Shown here one piece after another: positions 2,981 to 62,174 of a stretch of 64,000 bases of DNA. Numbering within the stretch: position 1 is the first letter of the stretch; each line of letters opens with the position of its first letter. Position numbers and translations under genes: made by a program. This DNA is from Macrostomum lignano (lineage: Eukaryota): the NCBI GenBank assembly GCA_002269645.1, contig NIVC01002668.1:62001-126000 (forward strand), written 5' to 3'. Below the pieces are notes generated by a model. The model worked only from the letters and a program-made list of their open reading frames with translations, was not told the origin of the DNA and searched no databases.

Positions 2981-4715
2981 ATGGCTAGCAATTTTCATGA
3001 GGATGCCGTTGACTTTCTTGACGACTCACCGGCTTTGACCAGTGATAACAGCGCCAGCGAGTACGCAAGCATTGATGGCGAGGTGGATGAAGAAGATGGC
3101 CAGAGTGACGTGGAAGGCTCTCAGGTAGAAGAAGCTTTGATTGAAAATGGATGGAATTTCGTTCAGGAGGGCGAAGACTCGCGTCTCCGGGATGCGCCAG
3201 AATTCCTCGGAGTGCCCGGTCTGAACCCGGATCTATTAGCCCAAGCGCCGGAAAACACAATGACTCGGATCGAATTCTTCCTCTAGCACTTTATTACCTC
3301 TGATCTGGTGTCTGCCATTCGATTTTGGACCAATGCTCGAGCTGATTTCGAGCTCCAAAACATTGCAACTGAGGCTGATGGACCTCTTCCCCCCTTACTA
3401 TCATCTTGGAGACAATGCACCGAAAACGAAGTGAGGAAATGTCTCGCCATTGTCCTGTACATGGGTCTAGTGAAGAAGCCCGAATTGCACATGTATTGGT
3501 CGACTGGCGATTTCTACGGTGGTGAATATTTTCAAAAAGAGCATTGCCTCGGAAGGGATCGGTTCATTCAGATCTTGTCATTCCTCCGATTCTACGACTG
3601 CACCGCAGTAAATAATCACCAGGATTCCCTGAAGAAAATCAGGCCATTTTTAGACATTGCGCGATGGTATTTGCCAAGCCAACTACTGCCCGAATCAGGA
3701 CGTTTCAGTAGATGAAGAGTTGGTCATGTACAAAGGCAGACTCATTTTCCGACAGTTCATGCCCAACAAGCGCGCCAGGTTCGGCATAAAGGTCTACTGT
3801 CTCACAGAGGCTTCCACCGGATTTCTGTGGAACTTCCGTGTGCATGCTGTCAAGCAGGACAACGACAGGTTTGGAGAAGGAGTGAACTGCGGGAATTTAT
3901 CTTTCAGTGAAAAGATTGTTGTCGAGCTAAGCAAGGACTTGCTGGGCTTGGACTACCGGATCTACTGTGACAGCTGGTTCACGTCGCTTCGCCTAGCTCA
4001 GTTTCTGCTCGAACGTAATACCATGCTGACAGGAACCGTGAGAGTCGACCGAGGCATCCCCAACGAGCTAAAGGTGCTGGCACTGCAACCCATAAGTCAC
4101 TCTCACATGCGCCGAGACGATGTTCTTGCCGTCAAGCTCGTTGACAGAAAGGCCAGTGGTCGCAAAACTGTCTACCTTTTGGACACCCACGGCGTCGCTG
4201 GAAGCACGGAAGTGAGGCGAGTAATTCGAGGCGGCGTGGTGGAGACAGTTTTGAAGCCCAACTCATTGCTGCAGTACAACAAGAGTATGGGAGGCGTCGA
4301 TCGCCTTGACGCAGCGCTACAACCCTACAGTGCAGGAAGAAGGACGCACAGGTGGCACCAGAAGCTCGGGTTTCATATTTTGCTTCAGTTGGTGCGCAAT
4401 GCTTGGATTTGTTACTGCCATTCTGGCAACTGCATGAAGTTCTTAGACTTCTTGGAGGCCACGATCCGCCTTCTGATGGAGCAGACGGGTCGGGGAAAGC
4501 GGCAGAACACATCGAAGCGTCGAGCTGCCTCGCTGCATACCCCATCCAAACTACCACCGACAGAGGCCAATATGAGACCGACTAAGCGGTGCAGAGTCTA
4601 CTATGGAAACGGCTCGGTCAAGCGAACTGTCTACGTGTGCGATGCTTGCCCTGGAGAGCCTGGACTTTGCGCAGCCCCTTGCTTTCAGAGCTGGCACACT
4701 GCCGCGGGGAACTGA
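2981..4715 (+). mobile_element. piggyBac/PGBD4-like transposase, inactivated
   Basis: Three consecutive ORF pieces: an acidic N-terminus, an in-frame TAG at 3284-3286, and a frameshift near 3660. DDD motifs VDEEL, YCDSWFTS and GGVDRLD are present. The C-terminal Cys-rich domain is RCRVY..VCDACPGEPGLCAAPCFQSWH. No TTAA-flanked TIRs were found. Confidence 0.92.
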
Positions 4716-6101: not shown

Positions 6102-9100
6102 TCAGCTAATTTCCAACATTAGACGAATACTTCTCAGCATTGGTCTGATCACGTATACATAGTCAGCTGCGTAAAGCCACTGCATATTTCTCGAACTGTT
6201 CCATCTGCTGCCGATCTCCGACAAGTTAAAGTAGCCGTTTGGATTGACGTAGGTGCAGCTGTCGTACCACCATCCAGCGTTACTATTCTGTCTTGAGCAG
6301 CGAGAATTCGACCCCGAGTCCATTGTTGAGAAGGTCAGATTGTTGTTGTAGGAGAATGCGTCCTTAGAGGTGTTGGAGCTGCCGGGCAGGTAACCGCTGA
6401 CACTCAGCCTGTACCGCGTGCTGGCGCTGCCAACCGAGAAGTGAGAGTACTCGCACACGTACAGCTTGCCGTTCTGATGGTTGCGAGCTTCCATTCGAAA
6501 CAGGCGCGGCGTTGCGCCACTCAGACTGTGGATCTTCTGCAGGCCTGCAGTTGTATTAGTTGGTGATGTGGCGGCCCGAAAAGCATCCGACATTATTTTT
6601 TTTTATTAGAGGCAGGGGGGTTGTGTGCACCCTGGCGCACTTTAAGCGACATGGGCACACAACCGGCGAGAGGCATTGCTGCCCATTCCACCGACTCCCC
6701 TGAGCAGGCATACAAGCGCGCGGATACGTACGCAGGCACACACTCACACAGGAGTGTACAGCGGCCCTAACTTTATATTATCGTTAGGCATGTACACTTC
6801 ACTGCGCCTTGGGGGGTTGGCTCTCAAGGCCGTTAATTGCACGAGCAGAGCCAAGCGGAGATTCCAATTCAGCCCCAAATTAATGTAACTGCACTTGGAA
6901 TCGAGCCTGGGTCGCTGGCACACCAGAGCAGCCGCGCTACCGCTGGGCTACGGCCCCCCTAAGCATCCGACATACTCGAAATACAAGACAATACATGTAG
7001 CTGTGTGCTGGGAGTTCCCCACTTTCTAAGCGATTCACTTAGCTGTGAAGAGATTGACTAGCTACTTAATCCGTTGAGCACCCTCCCCTAGTTCTCTCTC
7101 GTGACTCTTTCAACAGTATACTCACATATCTATACCATGCGTCCACCCTGGACCCTGGACCCACCTATCCATCAATCAATTCATCAACTCCAGGGGCGCA
7201 ACCAGGGGGGGGGCCTTTAGGCGGAGACCCAAAAAAATCGAAGGGGGGACCAAGCGAATTTTCGCAAAAAACAGAGCCACCCCTCCGCCCCCCCCCCCGG
7301 GACTTTACCCTCCAGAATCCCACCCTCAAAAAATTTCTGTTTGAATTCATCCATTCATTCACTTACTCATCTATCTATCAATTCGTCCACCAAAGGACCA
7401 AATGAAAACTGAATACTACGGACGGTCACAAATTCAGAAATCTCTTCGGTCGCCTATAACTGACCATCGGTCTCGTCTAACACTCGACCTACTGACATAA
7501 TAAAAACTTCTAAAATTTTTCGCAAGGCTTTGCTTAAAGTTTTTCGACTCACGCTAAACAACTGGCCCGACGCCACTCACCGATCCAGAAGTCAATATCG
7601 TCACCGAAGCCAGTCTCGTACTCAGTCCAGTTTCGCTGAAAACTCACTTTATCGGTGAGTCGCTGCTGAATTATTGTGAAACAACGACCGTCTCGCTTAA
7701 CTCGCTTAGCAAAGTCGGCTGTGCACAGCTCGGCCCGGGAACTGAGGCTGGAGCAGCTGGCTGCACTCCCAAGTGGTTTCATTCTCCATGATGAAGTGAT
7801 TCGGCTGGACTCGAAGAGGCACTGCTCAGCAACCAGCGATGTCACGCGCCACTGCACGTGTCGCCAGATATCAACAGGTTCCAAAAGAAGCACAGACCTG
7901 AAGTTGAACAATATTTTGCTAATAAAACTTTGAATCGACGTAAGAAATGGTCAAAAGACATATGAGCATTATGGAAAATCAAAGAGCTAAAATGGCAAAA
8001 GTCTTGCAATGTCATAAATGCCTTGCGTAAGAGGGCGATCCTTTGTGCGAATTTAATCCAAAGCATAAGAAACTGTGGGACAGAATCAGCCAGCTGCTAG
8101 AAGTTGATGAAACAGTGAATTCCCACCTGTCTCAGTGGTGGTGGATAGTTGCCTGCAGCGTTAGCAGCAGCACCTCCAATACTGTTTTGGTTGTACAGGA
8201 CTTATTGCATATGCTTCCAACTTCTTGCTATTGATCTTGTGATAGAAACTGTTGGGTGACTACACTCCTAGCTCATAAAAAACGTATTACAGAAGAATAC
8301 GACTCCCTAAACTGAAGGACTCACTTGATGTTTTTCGATAGCATAACTAATTCAGAAGCTGAAAGGACCAATTTGAATTTTGGATGCTTGATAAACTTGC
8401 AAACTTTAGGAGCGTTCACTGCGTCATCGAATAAAATAATCACACATTTTGTGCAAAATGACGACAGTATTTTTATGTCATGCGAGCAGGCAGAATAGTG
8501 AACTGCTGCTAAAAAGCGCTCAGAAATTATATACTAATAACGCATTCGCAAAAACCGAAACCGAAATTTCAAAGGGGATGTCAACTTAAGCACCAGAATG
8601 GAGCCCGAAGTTCAGCTCCGGACCAAACCGACTGCAATCGATAACTTGTCGGCCCAGACGACTAGAATCGCCGAGACATCCCATCCGGCTCCCTTCCTTG
8701 GGGTCCCAGGGGATAAAGGGGATAAAATGGGGATCTCATGTCAACTTAAGGCTCTGGAATGGAGCTCGAAGTTCAGCTCCGGACCAAACCGACTGCAATC
8801 GATAACTTGTCGGCCCAGACGACTAGAATCGCCAAGACATCCCATCCGGCTCCCTTCCTTGGGGTCCCAGGGGATAAAGGGGATAAAATGGGGATCTCAT
8901 GTCAACTTAAGGCTCTGGAATGGAGCCCGAAGTTCAGCTCCGGACCAAACCGACTGCAATCGATAACTTGTCGGCCCAGACGACTAGAATCGCCGAGACA
9001 TCCCATCCGGCTCCCTTCCTTGGGGTCCCAGGGGATAAAGGGGATAAAATGGGGATATCATGTCAACTTAAGGCTCTGGAATGGAGCCCGAAGTTCAGCT

Positions 9101-11205
9101 CCGGACCAAACCGACTGCAATCGATAACTTGTCGGCCCAGACGACTAGAATCGCAGAGACATCCGCTGTGCCACTATGTTCCGCTATGTCATTGAGTGCT
9201 GCTTTGCTGCCATTTAGCAGGACAAATGTGTTAACGAGAGGCACAAACCGTATCAGTGGCTGCCGTCAGCCGGCTTCAGTGAGCCCAGCCGATTAGACGT
9301 TGTTATCGAGACCTCGATGGCAAAGTACAACCGGGCGCAGTCGGTTTGGTCCGGAGCTGAACTTCGAGCTCCATTCCAGAGCCTTAAGTTGACATGAGAT
9401 CCCCATTTTATCCCCTTTATCCCCTGGGACCCCAAGGAAGGGAGCCGGATGGGATGTCTCGGCGATTCTAGTCGTCTGGGCCGACAAGTTATCGATTGCA
9501 GTCGGTTTGGTCCGGAGCTGAACTTCGGGCTCCATTCCAGAGCCTTAAGTTGACATGAGATCCCCATTTTATCCCCTTTATCCCCTGGGACCCAAGGAAG
9601 GGAGCCGGATGGGATGTCTCGGCGATTCTAGTCGTCTGGGCCGACAAGTTATCGATTGCAGTCGGTTTGGTCCGGAGCTGAACTTCGAGCTCCATTCCAG
9701 AGCCTTAAGTTGACATGAGATCCCCATTTTATCCCCTTTATCCCCTGGGACCCCAAGGAAGGGAGCCGGATGGGATGTCTCGGCGATTCTAGTCGTCTGG
9801 GCCGACAAGTTATCGATTGCAGTCGGTTTGGTCCGGAGCTGAACTTCGAGCTCCATTCCAGAGCCTTAAGTTGACATGAGATCCCCATTTTATCCCCTTT
9901 ATCCCCTGGGACCCCAAGGAAGGGAGCCGGATGGGATGTCTCGGCGATCCTAGTCGTCTGGGCCGACAAGTTATCGATTGCAGTCGGTTTGGTCCGGAGC
10001 TGAACTTCGGGCTCCATTCTGGTGCTTAAGTTGACATCCCCTTTCAAATTTCTTCATTTCAATGTCATAATATCATCAAACCTGAGTTCTCGGCACTGCA
10101 ATGATGTAGTGCAGAGCAGCCGCAGCTGAGCGGACCTCCAGTCTGCCGACACCATCAGCGGACCCACCTCGAACCGAGCACTCAACGAAGAGCTCACCGA
10201 TCTCTCAGCAGTCCACAGCCGCATGAAGTCGACCGAGAGAGGCGACAAGTCGGCCAACTGAGTCCTCACAGCATCGCGTGTGGCCTCATCTTGCAGTACC
10301 AGATCCAGCTTCAGGTAGTGCATGTCTCGGCTGTAGTCATACCTGACTGACTCGCTGCTCAAGCTGGAGATGTTGTGGCACAGCAGAGGCTCGATGAGGA
10401 AGTGGCCCTTCATGTCGAGTCTCTGGTGCACTCGGGCAGAGCAGTTCTCGAGATTGACGGTGCGGCTGAATTTCAGCTGTCGGCATGTCATCAGGGGTGA
10501 GAATCTTTGTGCGTTTATCTCTGAGTCGAGGAGGATGTCATTCTGCAGCCGGAGGCGACTCTGAACATCGTGGCAGGAGCCGTTTGCAATGATTGAAGCT
10601 GTTAGCTTCACTTTTTCAAGAGCTTCTCGGGGTGAATTTCTAAGGCCATCACTGTTCTTCTGACTGTACACGCATTGCATTGGAAGAATGTTTTCAATTA
10701 ACCATGTCTTTGGAACTCGACTTGAATTGTCCTCCGAGCTGATGTTTTTCAATCTGAGAGTGGCGACTGGCTCATCCGGAGTCCACAGGACGCCCAAAGC
10801 CCGAATCGATGAGCGGGTGTCGGCTGAGACGCTGATGTTGGTCACCGTGGCGAAGCTCACAGACCTCGGTGACAGATGCCGCAGTTGACGCTGAGCCTCT
10901 GCGAGCATCCCAGCGTCCCGCATCAATACAGGAACGCTGAAGTACAGCTGCTGGGTGATGAAGTCGAATCGGGGAGCAATGCCTACTAGGCTGTCCGTCA
11001 CGCACATGAGCGGCTCGACTGCCAAGTGCGGACCGTCGCTCTCTCCCGTGTCGTGCACGAACAGCGCGCAGCCGTTCACGCTGAGCTGCGCCACGAAGCG
11101 GAGCCGCGGAGAGTCAGCGGGAGCGCACTGGGAGACCTGGCCGGCTGCCAGCGAGCAGAGCAGCAGAGCCAGCAAAGTTTTGAAAAGCAAATTTAGTTGC
11201 TCCAT
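6102..11205 (-). CDS. FReD-1: secreted protein, signal peptide + two copies of an unrecognised domain + fibrinogen C-terminal domain (627 aa)
   Basis: Exons 11205..10082, 7897..7581 and 6544..6102 (1884 nt; intron phases 2 and 1 are consistent). Hydrophobic N-terminus LLALLLCSLAAG. FReD motifs IIQQR..VSFQRNWTEYETGFG..DFWIGL, FSTMD and GWWYDSC..VNPNG. Confidence 0.85.
6594..6960 (-). mobile_element. tRNA-derived SINE, family A, copy 1
   Basis: Minus-strand head with an A box (TAGCCCAGCGG) and a B box (GGCTCGATTCC), an A-rich tail, and a 13-bp TSD AAGCATCCGACAT (6581-6593 and 6961-6973). Confidence 0.88.
8574..10041. mobile_element. Foldback-type element with inverted arms built of 161-bp tandem repeats
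   Basis: Termini GGGGATGTCAACTTAAGCACCAGAATGGAG are inverted. About 3.7 forward units, a ~170-bp spacer and about 4.4 reverse units. 7-bp TSD TTTCAAA (8567-8573 and 10042-10048). Confidence 0.88.
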
Positions 11206-11619
11206 TATCTTTGTTCGTGAGAATTGAAGACTCTACAATCTGCTTTGTGTTTAAAGATGTGTAGAATTTTACAAACGCGTTTTAAAATAGGTTGAATTGC
11301 ACTTTATCTTTGCTGTTAGCATTCTTTTATTTATAATAGTCTGCAATTTAGAAATGCGTGACAAACGGGAACACTATAGAAAGTTTTGAATAAATAAATG
11401 CTCTATAATTAGGAAGAGACGCTTTAAAAACATATCTATTTTTAATCTGCAAGAGCTTCTGATTGCCTATTCAGATACAGGATGCTAATGCAGAATTTCA
11501 GCGCGATCAAGTTCAGGGGTTATTTTTATACTATCAAGTGAGCTTCGGCAGTCTCGAGACTAAACACCCTGGAGGCCGGGTCGAGCTATAGTTGATAAAA
11601 GGTGAAGGAGAATTCTGTT

Positions 11620-11712
11620 TACAGTGCTTACAGTGCTTCCAGTGCTTACAGTGCTTCCAGTGCTTACAGTGCTTCCAGTGCTTACAGTGCTTACAGTGCT
11701 TACAGTGCTTAA
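11620..11712. repeat. 9-bp tandem repeat (CAGTGCTTA/CAGTGCTTC)
   Basis: About 10 units visible directly. Confidence 0.85.
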
Positions 11713-12428
11713 AGTGCCTAAAGTACTAGCAGAGACTTTGAGGTTGCCCTTAGCTTCGCAATTCAACAACAGCTTCGAACCTAACTGCTACCTGCATGTA
11801 CTGACAGTGACGTATATCAAACTACAATTCATTGTCAGAGGATAAAAACAAGGCTAAATATTGTAAAATTTATTTACTATATGGCTGACTAATTTGATAT
11901 GAGAACTTTGTTGACAAAATAACTCAGAATTATCTTTATTCAATTATCGGACTTTCTAAATCCAATAGACTCAAAAGGCTACAGATCTTTATACTTAAAG
12001 ACGCGATTCACAAAATCTATGTGATGCAGCAGACATGGCTCTTAATTGTCTCTCTGTGCTCAAGCAGACTTTATCAGACTGAGTCTTCTAAGCATTTGGA
12101 CGAGTTTGACGCTTTTCAGATCAATTAAAAAAGCCTCACTCAATTGTTAGCACAGGACGCAGCAGTAGTGCAACTCGAGTATAGACATTATTCAATTTTA
12201 TTTAATCAATTTCTATTTATCAAAAATGACTTTTAAAAGACTTCTTAAAGTACAATGACCAATTAATTTGCTATTTTGAATCAGGCAAAAAAGAGATGAC
12301 GATTACTCAGTTAATCATAGAAAAATTTAATATATTAACAATGCAGATTAGATTAGATGCCGTCAGATTAAGAGATATTTAGACATTATTGCTGAGCATT
12401 TGTGAGAATTCATTTGTTTCTTTTCCTG

Positions 12429-14483
12429 TCAAATCTGGAGCAGCAGTCGTACTTGGCGAAGTGCCAGCCACCGGCGACGCGAAAACCAAGACATGTACAC
12501 ATCGTCCGAAGTCTCGCGGGTGGAAAAAATCCCGTTTGGGTTGAAGTGCATGCAGTTGTTGAACCACCAGCCACCTTTGCCGTAGCCGTCGGAGCACGAC
12601 TCACTGCGCCTGTCGTTGTCTGCGTCCATGGTGGAAAAACGCGACCGATTGTTGTGCTCCATGGCGTCCCAGCTGACGGTGGACCTCTCCGGCAGCATCT
12701 CTCGGTACGTCATCCGGTACCTGGAGCTGGCGTCGCCCACCTGGAATCCCGCGTACTCCGCATGCAACTCAGAGCCGTTCCACAGCCTCATCTCCACTCT
12801 GAGGGTGGCGCCACCTGTGCTTAGCAGACTAATTGCAGATAGACCTGAAAGTGCAACAAAGGCTACTGGAACTACAGCTTAGGCCTTATACAATTTCAGG
12901 ATGGATACATTTACTAAAATAACAAAAAACGAACCAATCCAAAAGTCGGTGTCGTGGCCAAAGCCAGTCTCGTATTCCGCCCACGTTCGCTGGAAGCTGA
13001 CGCTTCCACTCACCCTCTGCTGGATGGTCACGAACCATCTGCCGTCAGGTAAACTGCGAAACGTCTCGAAGGAAACAATTTTGGATCGCAATAGGCTGGG
13101 AATATTGCGGCAGGAGTTGTAGGTTGAGCAGGAAGGCGAACTGCCAATCGTTTTCATTCTCCAAGACAAAGATGCTTATGGGACATCAATAAGCACTGAT
13201 TCGCCACCAGAGAGGATGTCCGCCATTTTAGATGTCGCCACAAGTCAACAGGCTCCGACAGAGCAGAAAATCTAAAACAAGAGGCAATTTTCCTGTCATT
13301 CAATATGGACTAAAAAATTGCATTTAACTGCAGCGCCAACCTGGCAGCGCCACACTGGTTTAAGGACGAGCAGTACAGCCGCAGCTGAGCGGACCTCCAG
13401 TTTGCCGACACCATTAGCGGACCGACCTCGAACCGGGCACTCAACGAAGAGCTCACCGATCTCTCAGCAGTCCACAGCCGCATGAACTCCACTGAGAGAG
13501 GCGAAAAATCAGCCAGTTTAGTTCTCACAGTCTGAAGTGATGCTTCATCCTGCACTAAAAGGTTCAGCTTGAGATAATATTTGCCGCGGCTGAAGTCATA
13601 TCTGATTGACTCGCTGCTCAAGCTGGAGATGTTGTGGCACAGCAGAGGCTCGATAAGGAAGTGGCCCTTGATGTCGAGTCTCTGGTGCACTCGAACAGAG
13701 CAGTTCTCCAGACTGATGGAACGAATGAATCTCAGTTGTCGACATGAAGGCAGGGGACAGTACCTTAATCTGTACTCACTGGGGTCAAAGAAGGTGTGAT
13801 TTTGAGTCGATACTCGGTACTGGTAGGTCTGGTAGGTTCCGTTGAGAAAAAGCTTCGCCGATAAGCGAAGTCGTTGAAGGGATTCGACCGATGATAGCTG
13901 CAGTTCTGATCTGAGCAGGATGGTTCAGGTTTGTTCGAATCTTCACTATAATGATTTGTAAATATGAGCCAACCCAATTTTTCAAAACTTACGAGAGCTC
14001 ATATGCACTTCTGTCCATATCTGTTTCGATTCTTAGATCTCCAACGGACTCATGTGGACTCCAGATAAAAGCAATAGAACGAACAGTGGAGTTAGCATCT
14101 GTGGAAGCATTGACTTCTGACACAGCCGCAAAGGTCACAGACTTTGGTGATAGATGTTGCAGCTGACGCTGAGCTTCTGCCAGCATCCCATCATCCGTCA
14201 TCAACACAGGAATGCTCACGTACATCTGCTGCGTGATTAGATCCACTTTCGGACTCAGAGACTTTAAGCTTCGCGTCACGCACATGAGCGGCTCGACTGC
14301 CAAGTGCGGACCGTCGCTCGCTCCCGTGTCGTGCACGAACAGCGCGCAGCCGTTCACGCTGAGCTGCGCCACGAAGCGGAGCCGCGGAGAAGAGGCAGCG
14401 GGAGCGCACTGGGAGACCTGGCCGCTGACTCCCAGATAGAAGTACAGCAGTGACAGTGCTGCATTTTTGAGTGACATTTTCAT
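12429..14483 (-). pseudogene. FReD-2: paralogue of FReD-1 and FReD-3 with a 1-nt frameshift (pseudogene or assembly error)
   Basis: Exons 14483..13993, 13910..13341, 13271..12935 and 12844..12429 total 1814 nt, which is not a multiple of 3. Exon 3 is one base short near 13165-13175 relative to the paralogues, giving LCLGE*. The signal peptide, both N-terminal domains and the FReD (FSTMDADND, GGWWFNNCMHFNPNG) are otherwise intact. Confidence 0.75.
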
Positions 14484-15115
14484 TGAAGTGCCTTTCCTCA
14501 AGGTTTCTGTGCCTGCTATTCGAACATAGTTGTCTTCTAAATTTACTAATAAAAAATATCTTGCCGTTGAAATTTTTTAATTTATAGTGCTAATTATATA
14601 CCAGCGAATGCCAGATCAAGATTGTGTTGTCAAGTCTTAGTCAAATAAGTTTTGCTGTTTTCGTAATTGCCTGATACACCTACTTTCACGAGTAAAATTT
14701 AAGGGCAAATATACAAAAAATGGACTGAAATTTGATATTTTCAGCCTTTTGCTTAGGTGAATTGGTTATTTGTGACTTGCCTTGTCTGTCACTGCTTGTT
14801 GCGCACGTGCGTCTTAGAGTCACATGATGTTTTCCAATTCGCAAGTTCATTTTGGTGCAAAGCTTCGTTCGTTTCAAATTTAGCGTCTAAAGCTGTAGCG
14901 GCTTCCTCACCGTATCTGATGTTTACTCGCGTGCTTCTCTTGCAAGTTGCAGAAAGCATCCGCACCGGCTATTTGTGGGCTTGAAGCCAGTTTTCCGCTC
15001 GAAGTGGGAATCATCGATTTCCAAAACTACTTCATATACATGTACAAACGCATTTTTCTGGACTTGATGACCTTCTAATCAAAATTGCAAGTTTTATAAA
15101 GCTGTTTGTTTAACA

Positions 15116-15314
15116 CAGTGGTTTTTTGAAAGTTCACGATAGCAATCCGGCCCTCTCATTTGTGTCTTTTCTCCCCACTCCTCTCTTTTCTGTCATATGT
15201 CATCTCTTTCTTCTTCACTTTCCCCATTCTCTTCTCTTTTCTCGCTCATCTCGTGCGCAGCAATGAGCTGGATTTTTATCTGGCCCTTGAGATAAAAATT
15301 TTTGCCACCCCCTG
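15116..15314. mobile_element. Short hAT-like (Charlie-type) non-autonomous element
   Basis: CAGTGG...CTGGCCC...TTGCCACCCCCTG with imperfect TIRs. The 8-bp flanks GTTTAACA and GTTTAACG match at 7 of 8 positions. Confidence 0.5.
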
Positions 15315-15549
15315 GTTTAACGTATTCTTGCGTTGAAAACCTAAACAAAGATACAAATAAACTTTTTAATGTTAATGAAAACAGGAAACAGCTTAATCTT
15401 AATATTGCAGTTCTGTATTGAAAACGTTAAATCTGAGAACAGCGATTAAACAATCGCTTCCTTTATTTTATTGCGTCAAGTTTGCGCGGAAGTTTAATCA
15501 TCTCGACAAGTCCCGATTTGAACTTGTTCGTGTCGTGTTAAGCATCAGA

Positions 15550-18212
15550 TCATAACTGCACCATCAGCCGCACAAGCCGAATGGACATCCATCTGTCAGA
15601 GTGCCACAGCATGTACTTCAGGTTTATTGTCGGGCTGGTCGGGAACAGCCCATTTGGATTGAAATGGTAGCAGCTATTGAACCACCAGCCACCTCCGCCA
15701 TATGCATTGGAGCAGGACTTCCTACGGTCTCTGTCATTGTCCACATTGATGGTAGAAAACTGCATGCCTTTGTGGTACTGCATTGCATCGTGTTTGGCGT
15801 TAGACTTGTCCCTCAGCATCTCACGGTACGTCATCCGATACATGGAGCCGACGCCTTCAACTGTAAAGTTCGAGTACTCCGCGTACCACTCGGTGCCGTT
15901 CCACAGCTTCATCTCCACTCGAAGGGTGGCGCCGCCGTCGGTAAGCGAGGCAATTCTGTTCAGACCTGCAATGTCAATGAAGGGCGAATTCACGTTTGTT
16001 AATATTTGATTTGCTTTTTATGGGCTGGTGCGATTTGAAATGTTTAATAGTATTTAGAAGTATTGAAAGCACTGACAATATTTGAACGCTGAATTTCGCG
16101 TGTAGTTTCATTTTTACACTGGTAGCCCCTGGGACTCTTGCCGCGGCTAAGCCAAGATAAGTCTGACAAAAGGTTCTCAAAAGCAACTCAGATTTTATCA
16201 TACAGAAACAATAAAGAAAAACTTTTTAATGTTGAGACATCGTACCGATCCAGAAGTTGTTTTCATTCCCGAATCCGCGGATGTACGACGCCAGAGTGCG
16301 CCGAAAACTTTCCTCGGCCGAGACTCTCTGCTGTATAATGAAAAACCATCTGCCATCTGCGAGCCTTTTTAGCTTGCCAAAACTCAGGTCTCCACTCCGA
16401 GCAAGACTGCGAAGATAGGCGCAGCTTGCGGAGCGGCTGCAACTGATGGCGTCGGTGGAGCTTTCCGTTTTCCCAGAGGAGACGGTCGAGTCCGACTTGA
16501 AGAGGCAATCCGAATTAACAATTGACGTTGGATGCCAATTGATATGATACCAAAAAGCAAATGGATCCTTTGTCATTACATTGGACCTAAAATGTGTTGT
16601 AGTTTTATGGTTTTTTGTTTTAAAATACTAAAAAATTCGGAAATAATATACCTTTTTGCAATCAATTTCGTCGTTTTTGCATTCAATTTCGGCGCGAGCG
16701 CTAGTGTGCAGTCTAAACAACTGAGCCATAGACACTGGGCAACTTTTGCGTTCAAATTTGGCCTTTTTGCGTCCTATTTCGGCAGCTTACGGCATCAAAC
16801 ATATTTGCGGAGACGACTATAGGCCTGCTTTAGGAGACAAATTTTTCGTCCCACCCTCACTGAATGCGATCGAGTGAGAAAGTGTCTATGGCAAAAACAT
16901 TCGAACTGTGCCCACAGTGCGGCCCATGTGATTGCGCTGCCGAAATAGGACGCAAAAAGGCCGAATTTGAACGCAAAAGTTGCCCAGTGTCTATGGCTCA
17001 GTTGTTTGGACCGCACACTAGCGCTCGCGCCGAAATTGAACGCAAAAACGACGAAATTGATTGCAAAAAGGTATACTATAGAGGCAATAATTACTTCAGA
17101 TTGGTGCACTGTTTTATACTCCTGCAGTACAGCCGCAGCTGAGCGGACTTCCAGTCTGCCGACACCATCAGCGGACCGACCTCGAACCGAGAGCTCAACA
17201 AAGAGCTCACCGATCTCTCAACAGCCCACAGCCGCATAAACTCGACTGAGCGAGGCGACAATTCGGCCAGCTGTGTCCTCACGGCATCGAGTGTGGCCTC
17301 ATCTTGCAGCACGAGATCGAGTTTCAGGTAGTGCATGTTTCTGCCGTAGTCATATTCAACTGGTCCGTATGTTGACTTATCGACGCTCCAGAGTAGAGGC
17401 TCAATATAATAGGCACCCCTAGAATCGAGTCGCTGAAATACTCGAACTTGACGGTTTCTGTGGTGCATTAAAAGTACAAATTTAATGTCTGAGCAAGTTT
17501 CCAATTCGTATCTGGCACTTAAGAGAGACAGTTCCGTGAATCCGCGGTTTCGCGCCACTGGGCGCAGAGTGACTTGTCGAAATTTGCGATTTGATAAAAT
17601 GGTGGCCGTGAGTTGCACCTGGTCTAAGGCGTCGGTAGGCGACGTTTCTCGTCTAGAAATTGATTAGTTTAATATTGGTTTTGTCAAAAATTGCCAAAAA
17701 TATTTTTCTACCAAAAAGGACTCTAAATACACTCACTTCATCATCATCAGAGCCGCTTCTGTGTTATTTATTCCTATTTTTAGAACACCAGCCGAGTGAT
17801 TTGAACTCCACTCGAACCCAATAACGCTAGACTTGGTTGCCAAAGCTCCTATATTAGTGACAGTAGCGAAGCGAACGGGCTTTAGAGAAACGTTTCGCAG
17901 CTGCAGCCCAGCTTGGGCAAGCATGTGGGTATCCCATAGAAGCACCGGGACTCGGATGTACAAAATCTGCGAAATCAGATCGAGTTTCAAAGGCTGCTTT
18001 TCGATGGCACCAGTGACGCACATGATAGGCTCGATCTCCAGTGCATGCTCTCCCGAGTCGTATACAACCAGCGGACAGCCGCTCACGTTGAGCTGGGTCA
18101 CAAAGCGCGGCTTGGATGAGGCAGTTGGAGCTCTCTGAGGAAGCTGAGCAGCTACCAGCGAGCAGAAAATTAGAAGCAGTGCAGCCACTGCCACTTGGGC
18201 TGCGGAACTCAT
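15550..18212 (-). CDS. FReD-3: signal peptide + two unrecognised domains + fibrinogen C-terminal domain (596 aa)
   Basis: Exons 18212..17737, 17652..17095, 16586..16246 and 15965..15550 (1791 nt; phases 2, 2, 1; all GT-AG). Motifs FIIQQRVS..SFRR..YIRGFG..FWIGL, FSTINVDND and GGWWFNSCYHFNPNG. Confidence 0.88.
16649..17073. mobile_element. Tc1/mariner-type MITE in FReD-3 intron 2
   Basis: About 138-bp near-perfect TIRs (TACCTTTTTGCAATCAATTTCG...), flanked by TA on both sides. Confidence 0.85.
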
Positions 18213-20687: not shown

Positions 20688-23600
20688 ATGAAGCTGAAAG
20701 CCAAGCGGTCCGAGCCGCTGCAGCTGCTTCTGTGCCAGCTGCTCACGGGTGAGTCTGAATGGAAATGGTGCCACCTTGATGGAGACTCACTCACTGCTCA
20801 CTCACACTCCTTTCAGCTGTGGCCTCCGCCGTAGACCCCAGCGCCGTCACCAGAGGCTTCTACCATCGGGTGACCAGCGGCTTCATCGGCATCGGAAGCT
20901 ACGTGAGCAGCGAGCTGCTCAACGAGACGGGTGTTCGATCAGATGTTCTCTGCCTGTGGAAGTGCTGGGCAACGTCATGCGTTGTCGCAGTCGTCAAGGA
21001 AGCCGCGATCCTCGAATGCCAGGTGCTCGTCATCAACAATGCGAGCGAGCCGGGCTTGAGCAGCAGCAGCTTTGTTGCCAGGGAGATTCGGCTTGAGGAC
21101 GGCGTGCAGATCTGGAAGGCTGGCGACTTTGAGCAGCAGCTGCTCAGAGGCACCGACGCCGCGCGCCCACTCGGTGAGTTTGTGAAATTGGCTGATGGAG
21201 TTCATGATTCAGCATTCATGCAAACGCACCCGCATCATCTGATGCTTACTCAAAGCTCAGTTTTGAAGAAAGCTGTTTCAGCCTTAATTCCTATCGAATC
21301 CAACCCCGAATATCCATCTCACAGCGTACCTGGATTCTAAGAACGTGACTCACAAGCGGGTCCACATTCCCAACAACTCGGTGAAGATTATCGCCGCCTT
21401 TCTTCAGCACCAGTCGGCTGTCTCATCGCTCGTTGGCTGCGTTGACAAGTGCAGCGAGGTGCCGGACTGTCGCGGGATTGTGTTCAACTCCAGCAACTGC
21501 TCTCTGCTCACCGACTACCCGCTGTGCCGCTGGTTCGAGCAGCCTCCGAACAGCTCTGAGCTGGCCGTCTATGTGAGTGTTGGGAAAGGAAGCTTTTTGG
21601 CGTCACGTCACTGCTGAGTAAAGCATGTCTGCATTGATGACGATCGAGTTCCGGATGTTCCGGGTTCGGTTTCTGTGCCAGCGAGCAGTTTCTCTGAGCA
21701 GCTCAGCGGCTCGCGCGCCACGACCCTTGGGCCTTGGTTCGATTCTGTGTGCGGCCGCATTAATTTGGCCTTGTTCTCAGAAATTAGCTGAGGGGTCTTT
21801 TCTCTGATTTCCACACATGCCGGCCGACACTTCACAGACACATGCCGGCCGACACTTCACAGACACATGCGTGCCGACACTTCACAGACACATGCCGGCC
21901 GACACTTCACAGACACATGCGTGCCGACACTTCACAGACACATGCCGGCCGACACTTCACAGACACATGCGTGCCGACACTTCACAGACACATGCCGGCC
22001 GACACTTCACAGACACATGCGTGCCGACACTTCACAGACACATGCCGGCCGACACTTCACAGACACATGCGTGCCGACACTTCACAGACACATGCCGGCC
22101 GACATTTCACAGACACATGCCGGCCGACATTTCACAGACACATGCGTGACAGTTAGAAATTTAACAAGCCGCTTTTCATCCTGGACGTGTGCACGCGTGT
22201 TTGAGTGGCGTTCCTGCGTACACCATCTCTCAGTTTGAATGAATGTACGAGCTAAGGAGTCAGCAGTGTAACTGTCATACCAAGGACGAATTCAGTAGGA
22301 CGGGAAACCTCGTTTCTTGGAATAATTTTGAAGGCAGGTTTTTCAAAAAAATTCAGTGCGGAGACAGAAAGTTTTCATTTCTTAGCAAAAAAATTGTTAT
22401 TGCTTTAGATAGGAGGCAGATCCAGTGTTCATCTTTTGATATGCTGTTATTGCTGTTTTGTTTTTTTGTTTTTTCGCAATGTTGTTGGGGCTTCTGTCTC
22501 GGGCAAACTCGGTTCACTAAAGTTGCAGGAACGCATTCCACAGCCGGCGTCCGGCCTCCGGCTCTCGACAGAGGTCACTCAGGCTGGTCACGCCGAGTTG
22601 TCGCCGTACTCGGTTCAGGGCAGGGCAGCCTTGTTATTGCTGTCTTATTGCTCTATCGATATTCATAAAGCTTTTCGTTCAGAAAAATAGTTTTCTATGC
22701 CATTTTTCCACGTAAATTTGCACGTGTCTTGTGCCTAAAAACCATTAAAATGGCACAGCTCGGCTCTTTGGTTTTATTAGTGTATTTTGTTATTCTTATC
22801 TGACTGTTTAAATACGGAGTATGCTTAACAGAGATTATAAAATCGATTCAGAAAACCAAAAATTGGAGCTGTGCCAAGCATTTTTATGATTTTTAGGTAC
22901 AGGAAATGCACATAGAATAAGAAAAGAGCATAGAATCCTTTTTTTTAACGAAAAGCTTCAGAATATCGATAGAGCAACAAGAAAGACACAAAATATCAAA
23001 AGATGAACACTGGATCTGCCTCCTAACAAAAACGAAAACATTTTTTTCTGAAAAACCTGCTTTCAATTTTTTTTCAAGAAACGAGGCTTCCCGTCCTTTT
23101 ACTTGAGTCGTCCTTGAGTCATACATGTAGCTGCCTCAACGCTGCGGGACGTCCGATGCCACTGAAAGTGTTTGTTCAAGGATTCCACAAGTCTTATGCC
23201 AATAGTTATGTGAAAGTTGCTAGCAGTTAAAAATGCCTTTGTTGCATGAGTTTAATTTAAACAAGGCTGTAAAAGTATTTTGATTGCTTTCTGGATCAAC
23301 AGCTAACATCTCTGACAGTCCACATCGATTTCTATCACAAGAAAAATACTTTAAAGATTTCACGAAACCGCAAACTCAGGAGTTCCACACTGTGGGCACT
23401 CAGCAGTGCTTCCAGACCGTCAACCTGCGGGTGTCGGACGCGCTGAGCTTCGACCGGCTCTGGGCCGAGTACAAGGCCGGCTTCGGCACTTATCACGGCA
23501 ACTACTTTGCTGGTGAGTCACTTGGGGCTCTTTTACTTGAGTTTCTGGTCGTATGCGCACTGTGTTTTTCATAGAAGAAAGTAAGTATTATTTATTTTTC

Positions 23601-24528
23601 AGCTTATTGAGATCATTGGTAAATTTTGAATACTTTCGGAATTCAGAAATATGATATGTACTTGAAAAAACGTTTTTTTGAAAATTGAATTTATCTAAGT
23701 TATAAGAAACTTTGAATTTTTTAGCAACTATTACATATTCTACTTCAGCACTCAAAGCTACTTGTAAAAGTACACTCCGCCAAGCTACTCTAAAAGTACT
23801 CTGCATGTTCAAATCTTTTAGATTTCTCTTCCCATATTAAAATAGGATATTAGAATATTTAACAGCTCTACTTATCTGATGAAGATGAGGCAAGCGATAA
23901 CATGAAATATTCTCGTTTGTCAAAGACCAAATGTGTTTGCCTTGTGCAGCTCAAGTAGCTGTGTAAAAGCTTTGTAAAGTAAAAGATAAATGGGGACAAA
24001 CAAGTGATGCTTATTAATTCTAATGGGAAATTCTAAAGTAAGCCATGTAAAATTTTCTCACAAACAGGCCTCGAGTGGCTGCACGCCCGGACCAGCGCTC
24101 AGCCCAGCAGCAACCGGTTCCGCGTCGACCTGCTGTATTGGAACGACACCTTCATCTACGCCTACTACCTGAACGTGCTCATTCTGGCCGAGAGCACCAA
24201 CTACACGGTGTCTGAATTCACGTTTGAGCCTGCTGTGGGTCTTCGCCAGAACTTTTTTGTCGGCAATAACATCCAGTTTCAGACTCGAGATCGTGGCTTG
24301 AGTACCTGCATTAATGGACAGAACTGTGCCCAAAGGTACCAGCCTCAGTGGCACGCATGCTGCCATGCCTCAGGTCCGTTCGGCAAGTACTTCAACTACC
24401 CGACAGCGCTGAATGTGCCAGCTGCAGACCGAGCCAAGGGCATCGTTTGGGCTTCAAATGCTCCAAATAACATCACTGACGGATGGTACTACAGCTTCAA
24501 GCAGCTGGAGATTCTCATGCTGACCTGA
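20688..24528 (+). CDS. FReD-4: signal peptide + two PAN/apple-like domains + atypical fibrinogen C-terminal domain (419 aa, isoform a)
   Basis: Exons 20688..20748, 20817..21173, 21325..21572, 23380..23512 and 24068..24528 (1260 nt, phases consistent). PAN-like Cys patterns LCLWKCWATSC and GCVDKCSEVPDCRGIVFNSSNCSL. FReD motifs LRVSDALSFDRLWAEYKAGFG..NYFAGLEWLH and FQTRDR. The exon-4 acceptor was chosen by phase. Confidence 0.78.
21812..22147. repeat. 25-bp minisatellite (CACATGCCGGCCGACACTTCACAGA), about 13 units
   Basis: Two alternating variants (GCCG/GCGT) in FReD-4 intron 3. Confidence 0.92.
22281..23116. mobile_element. CAAGG-ended non-autonomous DNA transposon (P-superfamily-like), copy 1
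   Basis: TIRs CAAGGACGA...TCGTCCTTG. The 8-bp flanks TGTCATAC and AGTCATAC match at 7 of 8. Homologous throughout to 33856..34553. Confidence 0.8.
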
Positions 24529-25578: not shown

Positions 25579-26039
25579 GCCTGGAGTGGCTGCACGCCCG
25601 GACCAGCGCTCAGCCCAGCAACAACCGGTTCCGCGTCGACCTGCTGTACTGGAACGACACCTACATCTACGCCTACTACCTGAACGTGCTCATTCTGGCC
25701 GAGAGCACCAACTACACGGTGTCTGAATTCACGTTTGAGCCGGGTGGAGGTCTTCACCAGAACTTGTTCGGTGGCAATAACATCCAGTTTCAGACTCGAG
25801 ATCGTGGCTTGAGTACCTGCAATAATGGACAGAAATGTGCCCAAAGGTACCAGCCTCAGTGGCACGCATGCTGCCATGCCTCAGGTCCGTTCGGCAAGTA
25901 CTTCAACTACCCGACAGCGCTGAATGTGCCAGCTGCAGACCGAGCCAAGGGCATCGTTTGGGCTTCAAATGCTCCAACAAACATCACTGACGGGTTCTTC
26001 TACAGCTTCAAGCAGCTGGAGATTCTCATGCTCACCTGA
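25579..26039 (+). CDS. Duplicated terminal FReD exon (5b) of FReD-4; probable alternative last exon
   Basis: Same 461-nt length as exon 24068..24528, with its own CAG acceptor in the same phase and open to TGA. No separate copy of the upstream exons lies between the two. Confidence 0.75.
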
Positions 26040-26584
26040 AATATTTCATATTTTTCATGTCGTTTTACTCGCCTTCAGTTGCTTTAACCGTTAAATCAAC
26101 AACTGTGAGTCAGTTTCTCAAAAACATCTAGTTCTGTCTGACTCTGATGCAATTTTCGGACTCCAGTTTGCCCCCGAGTCCCTGTCCTCAATGAAGTCCA
26201 ATACCTAACCTAATGCTTGTACTCGTACCGCACTTGCCTCTTCTGTGTGTCAGTAAGGTCAGCCTGACAGCATCAAAAAATTAATTGACTATTTGTTAGA
26301 CTGTTGAAATTTTTAGGTGGCTTACTCGAAGTTTCCTCTGAAATATTAATTTATTGTACACGTTTCATGATGATGATTTCCTATGTAGCCATTTCCGCGC
26401 CAGTTAGCTACAGACATTTTCTTGCCAACTTGTTCTTCTTAAATAAAACTAAAGTAATTATTGAGGTCTGCTTTATCTCTCTGGAAAAAGCAGCATTTTC
26501 ATGGACTCTGATGTGTTTTGAACACACAAACTCTAATCGTGCTTGCATTAATCATATTGAAGACGATCCCAACTGATTGATTGA

Positions 26585-31959: not shown

Positions 31960-32482
31960 CTTAGCAAGTTGATTTTGTTTTACTATTTAGTAGGGCCTAC
32001 CTCTAAATTACTCTAGTCTAGGCAGTCTTACATGCAAAAAATAGATTCTTAACAACATGTCTTGATGGCTTAGTAAAAGGTGTGTAGATATACATAGATA
32101 GGCCTAACTTAATTTTTTTAGTATTTTATTATTTATCCAATAATATAATTGCATAGATGGAATTTCACAGATGTGACAAAAAGCCATAGAAATGTTTTTG
32201 CAATTTTTTATTAGCTATTAATAACCAATGACAATGTCTTTTTTTCTATTAGTAGGTTTATATAATTACAATATACTATATAGGACTAGGTCCTATAGTC
32301 TAGATCAAAGCAAGCATAGGCCTATACCAGAATGAAAATTAATGTTTTTTTCATTCATGCAGTAAAAAATGCAGTGCAATACAAAAAGGTAGAGAGAATA
32401 TAGATATGACATAAAAGCAGAGATATAAGAAAAAAGAGAGTATAGACTATAAGATGGAAGAGATTAGATAAAGATAAGAGAT

Positions 32483-32848
32483 TTTTTTATTAGAGGCAGG
32501 GGGGTTGTGTGCACCCTGGCGCACTTTAAGCAACATAGGCACACAACCGGCGAAAGGCATTACTGCCCATTCCGCCGACTCCCTTGAGCAGGCATACAAG
32601 CGCGTGGATACATATGCAGGCACACACTCACACAGGAGTGTACAGCGGCCCTAACTTTATATTATCGTTAGGCATGTACACTTCACTGTGCCTTGGGGGG
32701 GGGGGTTGGCTCTCAAGGCCATTAATTGCACAAGCAGAGCCAAGCCAAGATTCCAATTCAGCCCCAAATTGATGTGACTGCACTTGGAATTGAGCCTAGG
32801 TCGCTGGCACACCAGAGCAGCTGCGCTACCACTGGGCTACGGCCCTCC
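32483..32848 (-). mobile_element. tRNA-derived SINE, family A, copy 2
   Basis: Highly similar to 6594..6960. 14-bp TSD TAAAGATAAGAGAT (32469-32482 and 32849-32862). Confidence 0.9.
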
Positions 32849-32859
32849 TAAAGATAAGA

Positions 32860-61421: not shown

Positions 61422-62174
61422 TCAAACAGTCCATGTTGTTTTTTTGTTATCCTTGAATGTAAACTCCTGTTGTTGTCCTTGAACTCTCTGCTCCGCGAGC
61501 TACAATTTTTTGTGCAATTTTTTCATCATATCTTTTTGTTTGTGACACTTTCACTACCTGCTGACTCTGCATTGCCGTTGGCTGTGGGCCCTTGAATCTG
61601 AATGGTCAGGGACCGGCGGCATGATAACACTGTCTGTCAACTTCATTTTGCTTCCAAGTAGCTCTATTTTTTGTCTTCAACCAAAAGTACATATTTGTTA
61701 CCTCGCTTAATGCATACTTATACTGTTTTTTGTCCTCAAATATGCATTCGCCTAATAAATAATAAAGTTCTTATTTGGCTGTTATAGTTGCTATATTGTA
61801 AGGACCATTGATTTCTGTTATTGCATAACAGTTCTTGTTTGCGTGCAATCTGTTAAACATATCCGTTATTGTACACCTCCTATTCTTTATATTCATATAG
61901 CCCTATGTTTAATATCAAGCCGCAGTTCCAATGCACACACAGCTATGTCTAAACTTTTTTCATGTTGTTACTTTTTCAACATTCACGTCTTATTATTCAT
62001 TTATTCTGTCAGTCAGCTCTGGATTCACGTGTTCTTTCACGCTTTCACGTGAGTCATTCAATTCACAGTGAATTTTTGCTGGTTAGCGACTGCAGTTGTT
62101 TGTGGACCCGTTTGCTCAGCCCTGCTGTCTATACTTGATTTTGCCTGGTTGCTAGCTAATAGTGCTCATTATTC

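Follow-up and report, generated by a model that had tools for sequence, protein, structure and literature searches.

Fibrinogen-related domain (FReD) lectins are classified by the domain that precedes the FReD in the protein. A 64,000-nucleotide stretch of the Macrostomum lignano genome (GenBank assembly GCA_002269645.1, contig NIVC01002668.1, forward-strand positions 62,001 to 126,000; hereafter the window) contains, at its positions 6102-18212, a group of FReD genes whose long N-terminal module had resembled no known FReD partner in a preliminary description of the locus. What this module is, how it came to be combined with a FReD and what such proteins may do are the questions addressed here. 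The three minus-strand paralogues that had been reported proved to be a head-to-tail trio, running from the start ATG of gene 3 at 18212 to the stop codon of gene 1 at 6102, and the products of 627 (gene 1), 604 (gene 2, in its public copy) and 596 residues (gene 3) agree with the expected size of about 600 to 630 residues. By sequence comparison, the N-terminal module of these proteins is two copies of one six-cysteine unit, which is confined to Macrostomum-type sequences and also occurs, in other numbers, in front of a C-type lectin domain (CTLD). All coordinates below are those of the window unless stated otherwise.

Two copies of a six-cysteine unit in the N-terminal module

The preliminary description had divided the N-terminal module into two domains, A and B, each followed by a linker. 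The overall order of signal peptide, N-terminal module and FReD held, but this subdivision did not: domains A and B are mutually homologous (28% identity over 124 residues, E = 3e-10), and the supposed linkers are the tails of the units. In an alignment of 37 copies, the true repeat is 180 to 190 residues long and takes in both linkers. The WxHxxW...CL stretch that precedes the FReD aligned with the inter-repeat segments of C-type-lectin proteins, and a profile hidden Markov model (HMM) of the unit matched this stretch in each of the three genes, where it opens exon 3 (or, in gene 1, exon 2). All six units of the window were recognized by the unit HMM, their cores with independent E values (i-E) between 2e-34 and 9e-52.

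The unit carries an (I/L)EPL motif followed by its third cysteine (C3), with E45 and P46 kept in at least 90% of the units. Presence and absence of the cysteines were correlated in pairs across units. Both C2 and C3 were found in 19 units and neither in 8, without a single discordant case; the corresponding counts were 22, 4 and 1 discordant for C4 and C5, and again 22, 4 and 1 for C1 and C6. From this paired gain and loss we infer three disulfides per unit, C1-C6, C2-C3 and C4-C5, in what would be an extracellular domain. Bonding of C1 to C6 would anchor the unit's tail at its start.

Predicted structure of the unit and search for relatives

We modeled the spliced unit B of gene 1 with AlphaFold2 using an alignment of 29 units. 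The best model had a predicted local distance difference test score (pLDDT) of 93.2 and a predicted template modeling score of 0.85, and the five models ranged from 92.3 to 93.2 in pLDDT. In this model, five strands lead into a helix, which is followed by four further strands, a pair of helices and a closing hairpin, with the tail integrated into the fold; in all, the 180 residues hold about 11 strands, and two of the helices are long (residues 80-89 and 141-153). The model thus confidently predicts an alpha/beta fold that is not an immunoglobulin (Ig) sandwich, a collagen or a coiled coil. A model of the whole 374-residue N-terminus, computed with a shallow alignment of 20 paralogue sequences, had a pLDDT of 38.6 and was discarded.

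Structure prediction followed by a Foldseek search had been proposed as a way to check the novelty of the N-terminus, and it retrieved no match at E ≤ 0.001 among 350,542 PDB chains. The best pairs, with antibody Fab fragments and GAK kinase, had template modeling (TM) scores of 0.15-0.22 and root mean square deviations (rmsd) of 14-20 Å, i.e., noise. The earlier statement that the N-terminus resembles no recognized domain was likewise borne out by Pfam, which gave no match on the N-terminal exons at E ≤ 1; with 29 units searched at E ≤ 10, no family recurred and no Ig family appeared. NCBIfam and PDB sequence profiles yielded no relative of the unit. Riboflavin synthase in NCBIfam (15.9 bits against a cut-off of 155) and OTUD5, LENG8 and coronavirus nsp3 among PDB sequences (E 0.3-0.8) were rejected as chance matches. 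The module had also been described as neither coiled-coil nor collagen-like, in agreement with the globular unit model and with the absence of Gly-X-Y repeats and of a Collagen Pfam match.

An exhaustive HMMER scan of 1.84 billion representative proteins with a profile of the six window copies returned 15 proteins: from M. lignano, two Logan contigs, one JGI/IMG record and one low-complexity chance match from a sponge. The latter (Sycon ciliatum, P0031/P0053) is a low-complexity repeat containing the string EPLMCSTR and not a homologue. A further search with the unit alignment gave three close matches and nothing beyond the exhaustive scan. As judged from these searches, the unit is confined to Macrostomum-type sequences. 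That it corresponds to no described domain is well supported; calling its predicted fold new is provisional. The hedged proposal of an undescribed FReD class gained support in turn, as the N-terminus contains no Ig, collagen, EGF/FN3 or coiled-coil region, and our literature search found no paper describing this FReD family.

Gene models and evidence for splicing

Exon models were built by mapping the closest public proteins back onto the window and choosing GT-AG junctions. On the minus strand, gene 1 comprises exons 11205-10082, 7897-7581 and 6544-6102; gene 2, exons 14483-13993, 13910-13341, 13271-12935 and 12844-12429; and gene 3, exons 18212-17737, 17652-17095, 16586-16246 and 15965-15550. 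The reading frames of genes 1 and 3 are open, and the intron phases 2, 2 and 1 are identical across the three genes, the first intron of gene 1 being absent or read through in frame. Where genes 2 and 3 have this intron, gene 1 shows an in-frame stretch of 60 nt (10716-10657), a possible intron, and the public models of close paralogues either include or lack the equivalent 63 nt (P0001 versus P0017). The sequence suggests that the gene 1 stretch is an optionally retained in-frame intron.

The predicted signal peptide of gene 1, read from the sequence, is encoded at 11140-11205 (MEQLNLLFKTLLALLLCSLAAG, followed by QVSQC), and the translated models of genes 2 and 3 have equivalent hydrophobic N-termini. 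In the low-confidence whole-N-terminus model mentioned above, residues 2-19 of gene 1 form a helix. No hydrophobic C-terminal anchor was found in the translated products of genes 1 to 3. The combination of a signal sequence with the absence of such an anchor argues that the three proteins are probably secreted.

The units and the FReDs were placed with the unit HMM and Pfam, respectively. In gene 1, unit A (core and degenerate tail; i-E 1.9e-50) lies at 10555-11142 and has lost the C4-C5 pair. The core of unit B, from C1 to C5, lies at 10082-10524 (i-E 8.7e-52; the AlphaFold2 query), and its tail, a helix and a beta-hairpin with C6, at 7795-7897 (unit HMM positions 146-178; pLDDT 81-97). The FReD of gene 1 is encoded by 7731-7581 and 6544-6105, its last exon being highly diverged. 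In gene 2, the core and tail of unit A are found at 13995-14423 and 13915-13820, those of unit B at 13341-13768 and 13273-13175, and the FReD (E 2e-19) at 12432-13140, i.e., the 3′ part of exon 3, intron 3 (12934-12845) and exon 4. In gene 3, unit A has its core at 17760-18146 and its tail at 17651-17574; unit B, from which C2 and C3 were lost together, has its core at 17097-17516 and its tail at 16588-16487; and the FReD (E 7e-24) spans 15553-16450, covering the 3′ part of exon 3, intron 3 (16245-15966) and the whole of exon 4.

Genes 2 and 3 correspond to the M. lignano GenBank genes BOX15_Mlig006328g1 and BOX15_Mlig015699g1 (proteins ~99% identical), which are adjacent on contig NIVC01001149.1, a contig colinear with the window at 97-99.5% identity. 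The exons of gene 3 are 99-100% identical to the public exons and have the same borders. The GenBank annotation of the M. lignano assembly was built from RNA-seq transcript assemblies (PMC5730564). Because the public models of genes 2 and 3 derive from RNA-seq and their exon borders equal those of our window models, the N-terminal exons and the FReD exons of these two genes are joined in transcripts, a point on which the reality of the architecture had been made to depend. Their sequences are thus already public but uncharacterized. The N-terminus of gene 1 has 21 relatives in the databases, all of them from M. lignano and bearing no names other than "hypothetical protein BOX15_Mlig..." or "Fibrinogen C-terminal domain-containing protein."

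A full-length public model is lacking for gene 1, and the best protein match of its 383-residue first-exon open reading frame (ORF) is 79% identical. Its public copy on NIVC01001149.1 misses 834 bp corresponding to window 7073-7906, including exon 2 (junction at 15207/15208 of the public locus, L001), contains an in-frame stop in exon 1 (SADTRS*IRALG) and is annotated solely as a 132-residue FReD fragment. Gene 1 is open throughout in the window and intact only in this version. Gene 2, in the window only, carries a 1-nt deletion at 13168 in exon 3 (CTTT-GTC versus CTTTCGTC in the public copy), which causes a frameshift just before the FReD and may be either a genuine null, as an allele or a copy, or an indel of the assembly. 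More generally, the differences between the window and the public copies of genes 1 and 2 may be allelic, homeologous or due to long-read indel errors.

The FReD head

The Fibrinogen_C family (PF00147) matched the 3′ exons of genes 1 to 3 at E 2e-7 to 7e-24. Their last exons scored 70-85 bits against a Pfam cut-off of 22, and relatives scored 51-109 bits. The closest PDB sequences were fibrinogen-420 alphaEC (E 4e-22), ficolin-3, angiopoietin-like proteins and tenascins (to 1e-19), and matches spanned E 4e-22 to 1e-12 overall. The cysteine pair that flanks GGWW and the NPNG turn are present in gene 3 (CSNAYGGGGWWFNSC...NPNG), gene 2 (CSDGYGKGGWWFNNC...NPNG) and gene 1 (CSRQNSNAGWWYDSC...NPNG). 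By these sequence features, the C-terminal domain of the three proteins is a genuine FReD. The calcium motif FSTxDxDxD is kept in gene 2 (FSTMDADND); in gene 3 its first Asp is replaced by Asn (FSTINVDND), and in gene 1 the second Asp is lost (FSTMDSGSN).

An exon cassette shared with C-type lectin proteins

The scan matches included FReD proteins of other compositions, namely four divergent proteins with two units (P0024, P0025, P0029 and P0030) and one with a single unit (P0028). Three large proteins of 1285-1462 residues (P0022, P0023 and P0034) have five or six units followed by a C-terminal Lectin_C domain. CTLD-type proteins of M. lignano are BOX15_Mlig001894g2, 001890g2 and 001546g1, annotated as C-type lectin domain-containing proteins. 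The CTLD-type relatives share with the FReD proteins the unit itself (5-6 HMM matches per protein, E 1e-43 to 1e-61), the cysteine pattern and the position of the intra-unit intron, and differ from them in unit number, about six rather than two, and in the head, which is a Lectin_C domain and not a FReD. Inspection by eye of the CTLD of these relatives did not reveal the canonical EPN/QPD and WND sugar-binding motifs. P0022 differs further by an N-terminal mucin-like Ser/Thr/Pro repeat, which precedes its six units and the CTLD. This protein is encoded by a Logan contig (SRR30276812; L009, 4758 nt) with an uninterrupted, transcript-like 4.4-kb ORF of 1462 codons, and it is 49% identical to an M. 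lignano protein. It evidently represents a transcript from another species and shows the unit to be older than M. lignano.

A phase-2 intron interrupts both units of genes 2 and 3, and likewise unit B of gene 1, at unit HMM position ~145; the corresponding stretch of gene 1 unit A reads in frame. The middle exon of genes 2 and 3 (558-570 nt, phase 2-2) consequently consists of the tail of unit A and the core of unit B. The same arrangement is found in a CTLD gene on NIVC01000698.1 (L008), whose exons of 660, 612, ~576 and 612 nt each join a unit's tail to the core of the unit after it, and whose 3′ end has a short exon followed by the CTLD exon. Because the intron position is equal in FReD and CTLD genes, tail plus core forms a symmetric exon cassette that can be duplicated or joined without loss of frame. 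Proteins with one, two and six units and with two kinds of head would have arisen by duplication and shuffling of this cassette. The claim of expansion by local duplication applies to the three genes of the window, but describes the family only in part, since the five close paralogues each occur singly on other contigs, i.e., the family is also dispersed. On L008, a TIR_2 plus SAM_2 gene (positions 26000-26150 and beyond) lies ~8 kb downstream of BOX15_Mlig001894g2.

Homogenized units and diverging heads

We compared amino-acid identity among seven close paralogues and synonymous divergence (dS) among the five of them for which DNA was available. The unit cores are 92-93% identical, with dS of 0.08-0.12, and the inter-unit segment 49% identical, with dS of 0.92. 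Within the FReD, dS is 0.11 in the A/B part and 0.37 in the P region; the last FReD exon as a whole has dS of 0.20 and 75% amino-acid identity. Between gene 1 and the clade of close paralogues, dS is 0.12 in the units and ~1 or saturated in the FReD, a contrast showing that the 5′ and 3′ halves of gene 1 differ in history. Synonymous differences in 30-codon windows were also unevenly distributed among the window genes: against a background of 0.6-0.9 between the three genes, they dropped, between genes 1 and 2, to 0.04 (residues 23-52) and 0.11 (residues 263-292) and, between genes 1 and 3, to 0.18-0.27 (residues 293-352). We read this pattern as the probable trace of recurrent gene conversion, or of another homogenization at the nucleotide level, centered on the unit cores and acting on tandem and dispersed copies. 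We considered and rejected an import of gene 1's last exon from another FReD subfamily, as the best matches of this exon still belong to the same clade (~38% identity); it looks like the outcome of old or fast divergence together with conversion of the 5′ part.

The ratio of nonsynonymous to synonymous divergence (dN/dS) was 0.33-0.67 in the unit cores and FReD windows, where constraint is evident from these sequence comparisons. Values above 1 came from two short stretches with very low dS (0.07-0.10), the unit B tail (40 codons, 1.13) and the pre-FReD junction (35 codons, 1.44).

Surroundings of the genes

The first intron of gene 1 contains, outside the coding unit, a block (8574-10041) in which a 161-bp satellite forms two oppositely oriented arrays (8578-9164 and 9337-10037; 97-98% internal identity). 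The public copy of the locus lacks the block, which is an insertion/deletion polymorphism, possibly a foldback-type element. The second intron of gene 1 holds, at ~6600-6960, a dispersed repeat with a tRNA-like stretch, whose public counterpart (L001 15318-15674) also matches window 32482-32851 at ~90% identity. ARAGORN did not call this stretch as a tRNA, and the repeat may be a SINE-like element (short interspersed nuclear element). Intron 2 of gene 3 has a 425-bp insertion (16649-17072) present only in the window, which carries a duplicated stretch with near-identical ORFs (…AINFVVFAFNFGASAS…) on both sides.

Beyond the trio, piggyBac-type transposase ORFs (DDE_Tnp_1_7, E 2e-37, and a zinc finger) occupy 3308-4715 on the plus strand, between a thymidine phosphorylase fragment and gene 1. 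Also on the plus strand, 23284-23574, 24175-24528 and 25686-26039 form a very diverged FReD-like gene with a W.EY..GFG exon and a P-domain-like exon; it scores 15-21 bits with Pfam, slightly below the cut-off of 22, and a second copy of its last exon lies 1.5 kb downstream. The sequence upstream of this gene showed no repeat unit. The window's right half (26500-63000) is dense in minisatellites: over 25 arrays, built of 15-43-bp units in as many as 65 copies, alternate with the exons of a gene for a ZIP zinc transporter (e.g., 58005-58835, Zip E 2e-37).

Comparison with known FReD proteins

Snail CREPs carry the N-terminal module of the fibrinogen-related proteins known as FREPs in front of a C-type lectin head. 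The Macrostomum family resembles the FREP/CREP pair in this respect, in that one kind of N-terminal module also bears another lectin head, here the CTLD. Like FREPs, its members are probably secreted, with one or two repeated N-terminal domains, a short spacer and a C-terminal fibrinogen domain (FBG, or FReD), and are encoded by a multigene family with clustered and dispersed copies. Molluscan FREPs (VIgLs) consist of one or two N-terminal domains of the Ig superfamily (IgSF), an interceding region and a C-terminal FBG; the same source names CREPs only in passing (PMC7588048). The flatworm proteins differ from them in having a 180-190-residue six-cysteine alpha/beta unit instead of IgSF domains, and in lacking a coiled-coil interceding region, the segment before the FReD being a unit tail (modeled at pLDDT 81-97). 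Conservation in the Macrostomum family is highest in the N-terminal units, and the P region of the FReD is variable. By this comparison, the family is not homologous to FREPs outside the FReD, and may be VIgL-like in its working without being a VIgL.

Ficolins, tachylectin-5A and FIBCD1 share the FReD with the flatworm proteins (ficolin-3, E 4e-20; ficolin-1 and -2, ~1e-15 to 1e-13; FIBCD1, E 3e-13; tachylectin-5A, E 1e-12, against PDB sequences), as well as the P-domain cysteine pair around GGWW and, in gene 2, the DxDxD motif. Unlike these lectins, the flatworm proteins have no collagen-like or coiled-coil oligomerization region, their alignments to Pfam and PDB sequences begin ~35-45 residues inside the canonical domain, and gene 1 has lost a calcium ligand. 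Tenascins, angiopoietins and angiopoietin-like proteins also have a FReD C-terminal to a non-lectin region (PDB matches at E 1e-19 to 1e-13). In contrast, the EGF/FN3 or coiled-coil regions of tenascins and angiopoietins have no Pfam match here, and the flatworm family is genus-restricted and multicopy.

Possible functions and alternative explanations

We lean towards the reading that the locus is a tandem trio of Macrostomum-restricted, secreted modular lectins for extracellular pattern recognition, a parallel of independent origin to the FREP/CREP system. In such proteins the FReD would be the ligand-recognition head, with ligands of the acetyl or glycan type, as ficolins and tachylectin-5A suggest, and its binding would be Ca2+ dependent in genes 2 and 3, if ficolins, tachylectin-5A and FIBCD1 are a guide. 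The conserved units might serve as a constant stalk that presents the head, docks onto a common partner, or both; docking could occur through oligomerization, an effector or a cell-surface receptor. Exon duplication and shuffling would add units and swap heads. The family would then provide a set of extracellular lectins with different specificities, most plausibly against microbes, and an immune role would follow by analogy. More tentatively, a structurally new domain, unlike any solved structure, could have arisen in the Macrostomum lineage and become the constant, conversion-homogenized scaffold of a combinatorial lectin repertoire, its exon cassette being combined with diversifying FReD heads or with a CTLD head, and the whole would be an independent FREP/CREP-like system; we regard this stronger proposal as possible but doubtful.

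Several observations weigh against a family of recognition lectins with a novel N-terminal fold. A Ca2+ ligand is missing from gene 1 (DSGSN), whose public copy is a pseudogene, and gene 2 is frameshifted in the window; the cluster may be partly decaying. Positive selection on the FReD P region is unsupported, the mean dN/dS there, a regional average, being 0.58. The FReD alignments begin only at Pfam position 34-39 of 221 and at residue ~40-50 of the PDB chains, and the Cys-containing stretch that precedes the aligned part is not alignable to the canonical A subdomain, which by sequence is atypical. No oligomerization motif was identified in the proteins of genes 1 to 3. Literature searches, including a look-up of transcript identifiers in full texts and supplements, found no expression, localization, binding or challenge data. 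As for the fold, the prediction rests on 29 mostly paralogous sequences, and one entry of BFVD, A0A7S7YF07 of Medusavirus stheno T3, matches the unit model (E 3e-4, TM 0.52, 174 columns, 14% identity), so structural relatives of the unit may exist outside the PDB. This viral protein is uncharacterized and carries no functional information; it is the sole significant structural match of the unit among PDB and predicted viral structures.

The trio might instead encode reproduction-related secreted proteins, e.g., of the seminal fluid, the sperm or egg coat or the shell gland, which evolve under sexual selection or conflict and whose FReD binds gametes or tissue of the partner. Restriction to one genus, secretion, richness in cysteines and fast turnover, with pseudogenes, copy differences between assemblies and diverging heads, would all fit, and lineage-specific secreted genes of Macrostomum are often expressed in the gonads or the prostate. 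We nevertheless consider this role rather unlikely, since FReDs and CTLDs are classic carbohydrate-recognition modules of humoral immunity and we found no link to published seminal-fluid or positional screens. A function in the extracellular matrix, mucus or adhesion, with the units as structural spacers and the FReD or CTLD cross-linking glycans of the animal's own secretions, appears less probable again. It would suit the bead-like array of repeats with a terminal lectin, most of all the CTLD relative with about six units and a mucin-like Ser/Thr/Pro stretch, and tenascin-R and tenascin-C, which are matrix proteins, are among the PDB matches; yet the FReD members are short (~600 residues) with only two units, numerous paralogues with diverging heads would not be expected of a structural role, and a paper on M. 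lignano adhesive proteins mentions fibrinogen in an unrelated context only.

At about the same low level, and if anything below it, we place the explanation that the cluster is decaying and has little or no function, its genes being transcribed relics in a repeat-rich, recently duplicated genome. The frameshift of gene 2, the stop and the missing exon 2 in the public copy of gene 1, the very diverged last exon of gene 1 with its lost calcium site, and surroundings full of satellites, plus a transposase, all point that way. However, none of the genes is disrupted in both of the copies compared, indels of one base may stem from errors of long-read assembly, dN/dS of 0.3-0.7 in the domains is below neutrality, cysteines are lost pairwise and intron phases are conserved, and another sample expresses a 49%-identical relative with a full-length ORF. 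Finally, the N-terminal domains could be extremely diverged IgSF domains and the proteins true homologues of molluscan FREPs (VIgLs), an idea encouraged by the superficially equal layout of signal peptide, two similarly sized N-terminal domains, spacer and FBG in a multigene family, and by the many Fabs at the top of the Foldseek list. These Fab matches are noise (E 0.05-0.2, with the TM and rmsd values given above); two long helices and ~11 strands in 180 residues do not agree with an all-beta sandwich of 7-9 strands and ~100 residues; no Ig Pfam family matched any of 29 units at E ≤ 10; and a terminal C1-C6 pair within a six-cysteine pattern differs from the Ig B-F disulfide. A divergent Ig domain was ruled out on the alpha/beta model, the Foldseek noise and the negative Pfam result, leaving true FREP homology as very improbable indeed.

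Significance

Taking the family as a set of candidate recognition lectins, what is new here is the repeat unit with its predicted disulfide pattern, its confidently modeled fold without a match, its restriction to Macrostomum-type sequences, the pairing of FReD and CTLD through a common exon cassette, and the mosaic of conversion and divergence. Practical yields are an intact gene 1 model, missing from public annotation, and a domain definition for domain databases. The narrow taxonomic range limits the interest of the family. Within it, the unit is a new kind of FReD partner, with a fold modeled confidently, no PDB match and an occurrence in one flatworm genus. The family offers a natural example of modular recognition proteins built by exon shuffling, and one in which gene conversion would hold a "constant" region while the "head" drifts. 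To our knowledge, almost nothing is known about humoral recognition in flatworms. As M. lignano is amenable to transgenesis and RNA interference, the function of this candidate family of immune lectins is directly testable.

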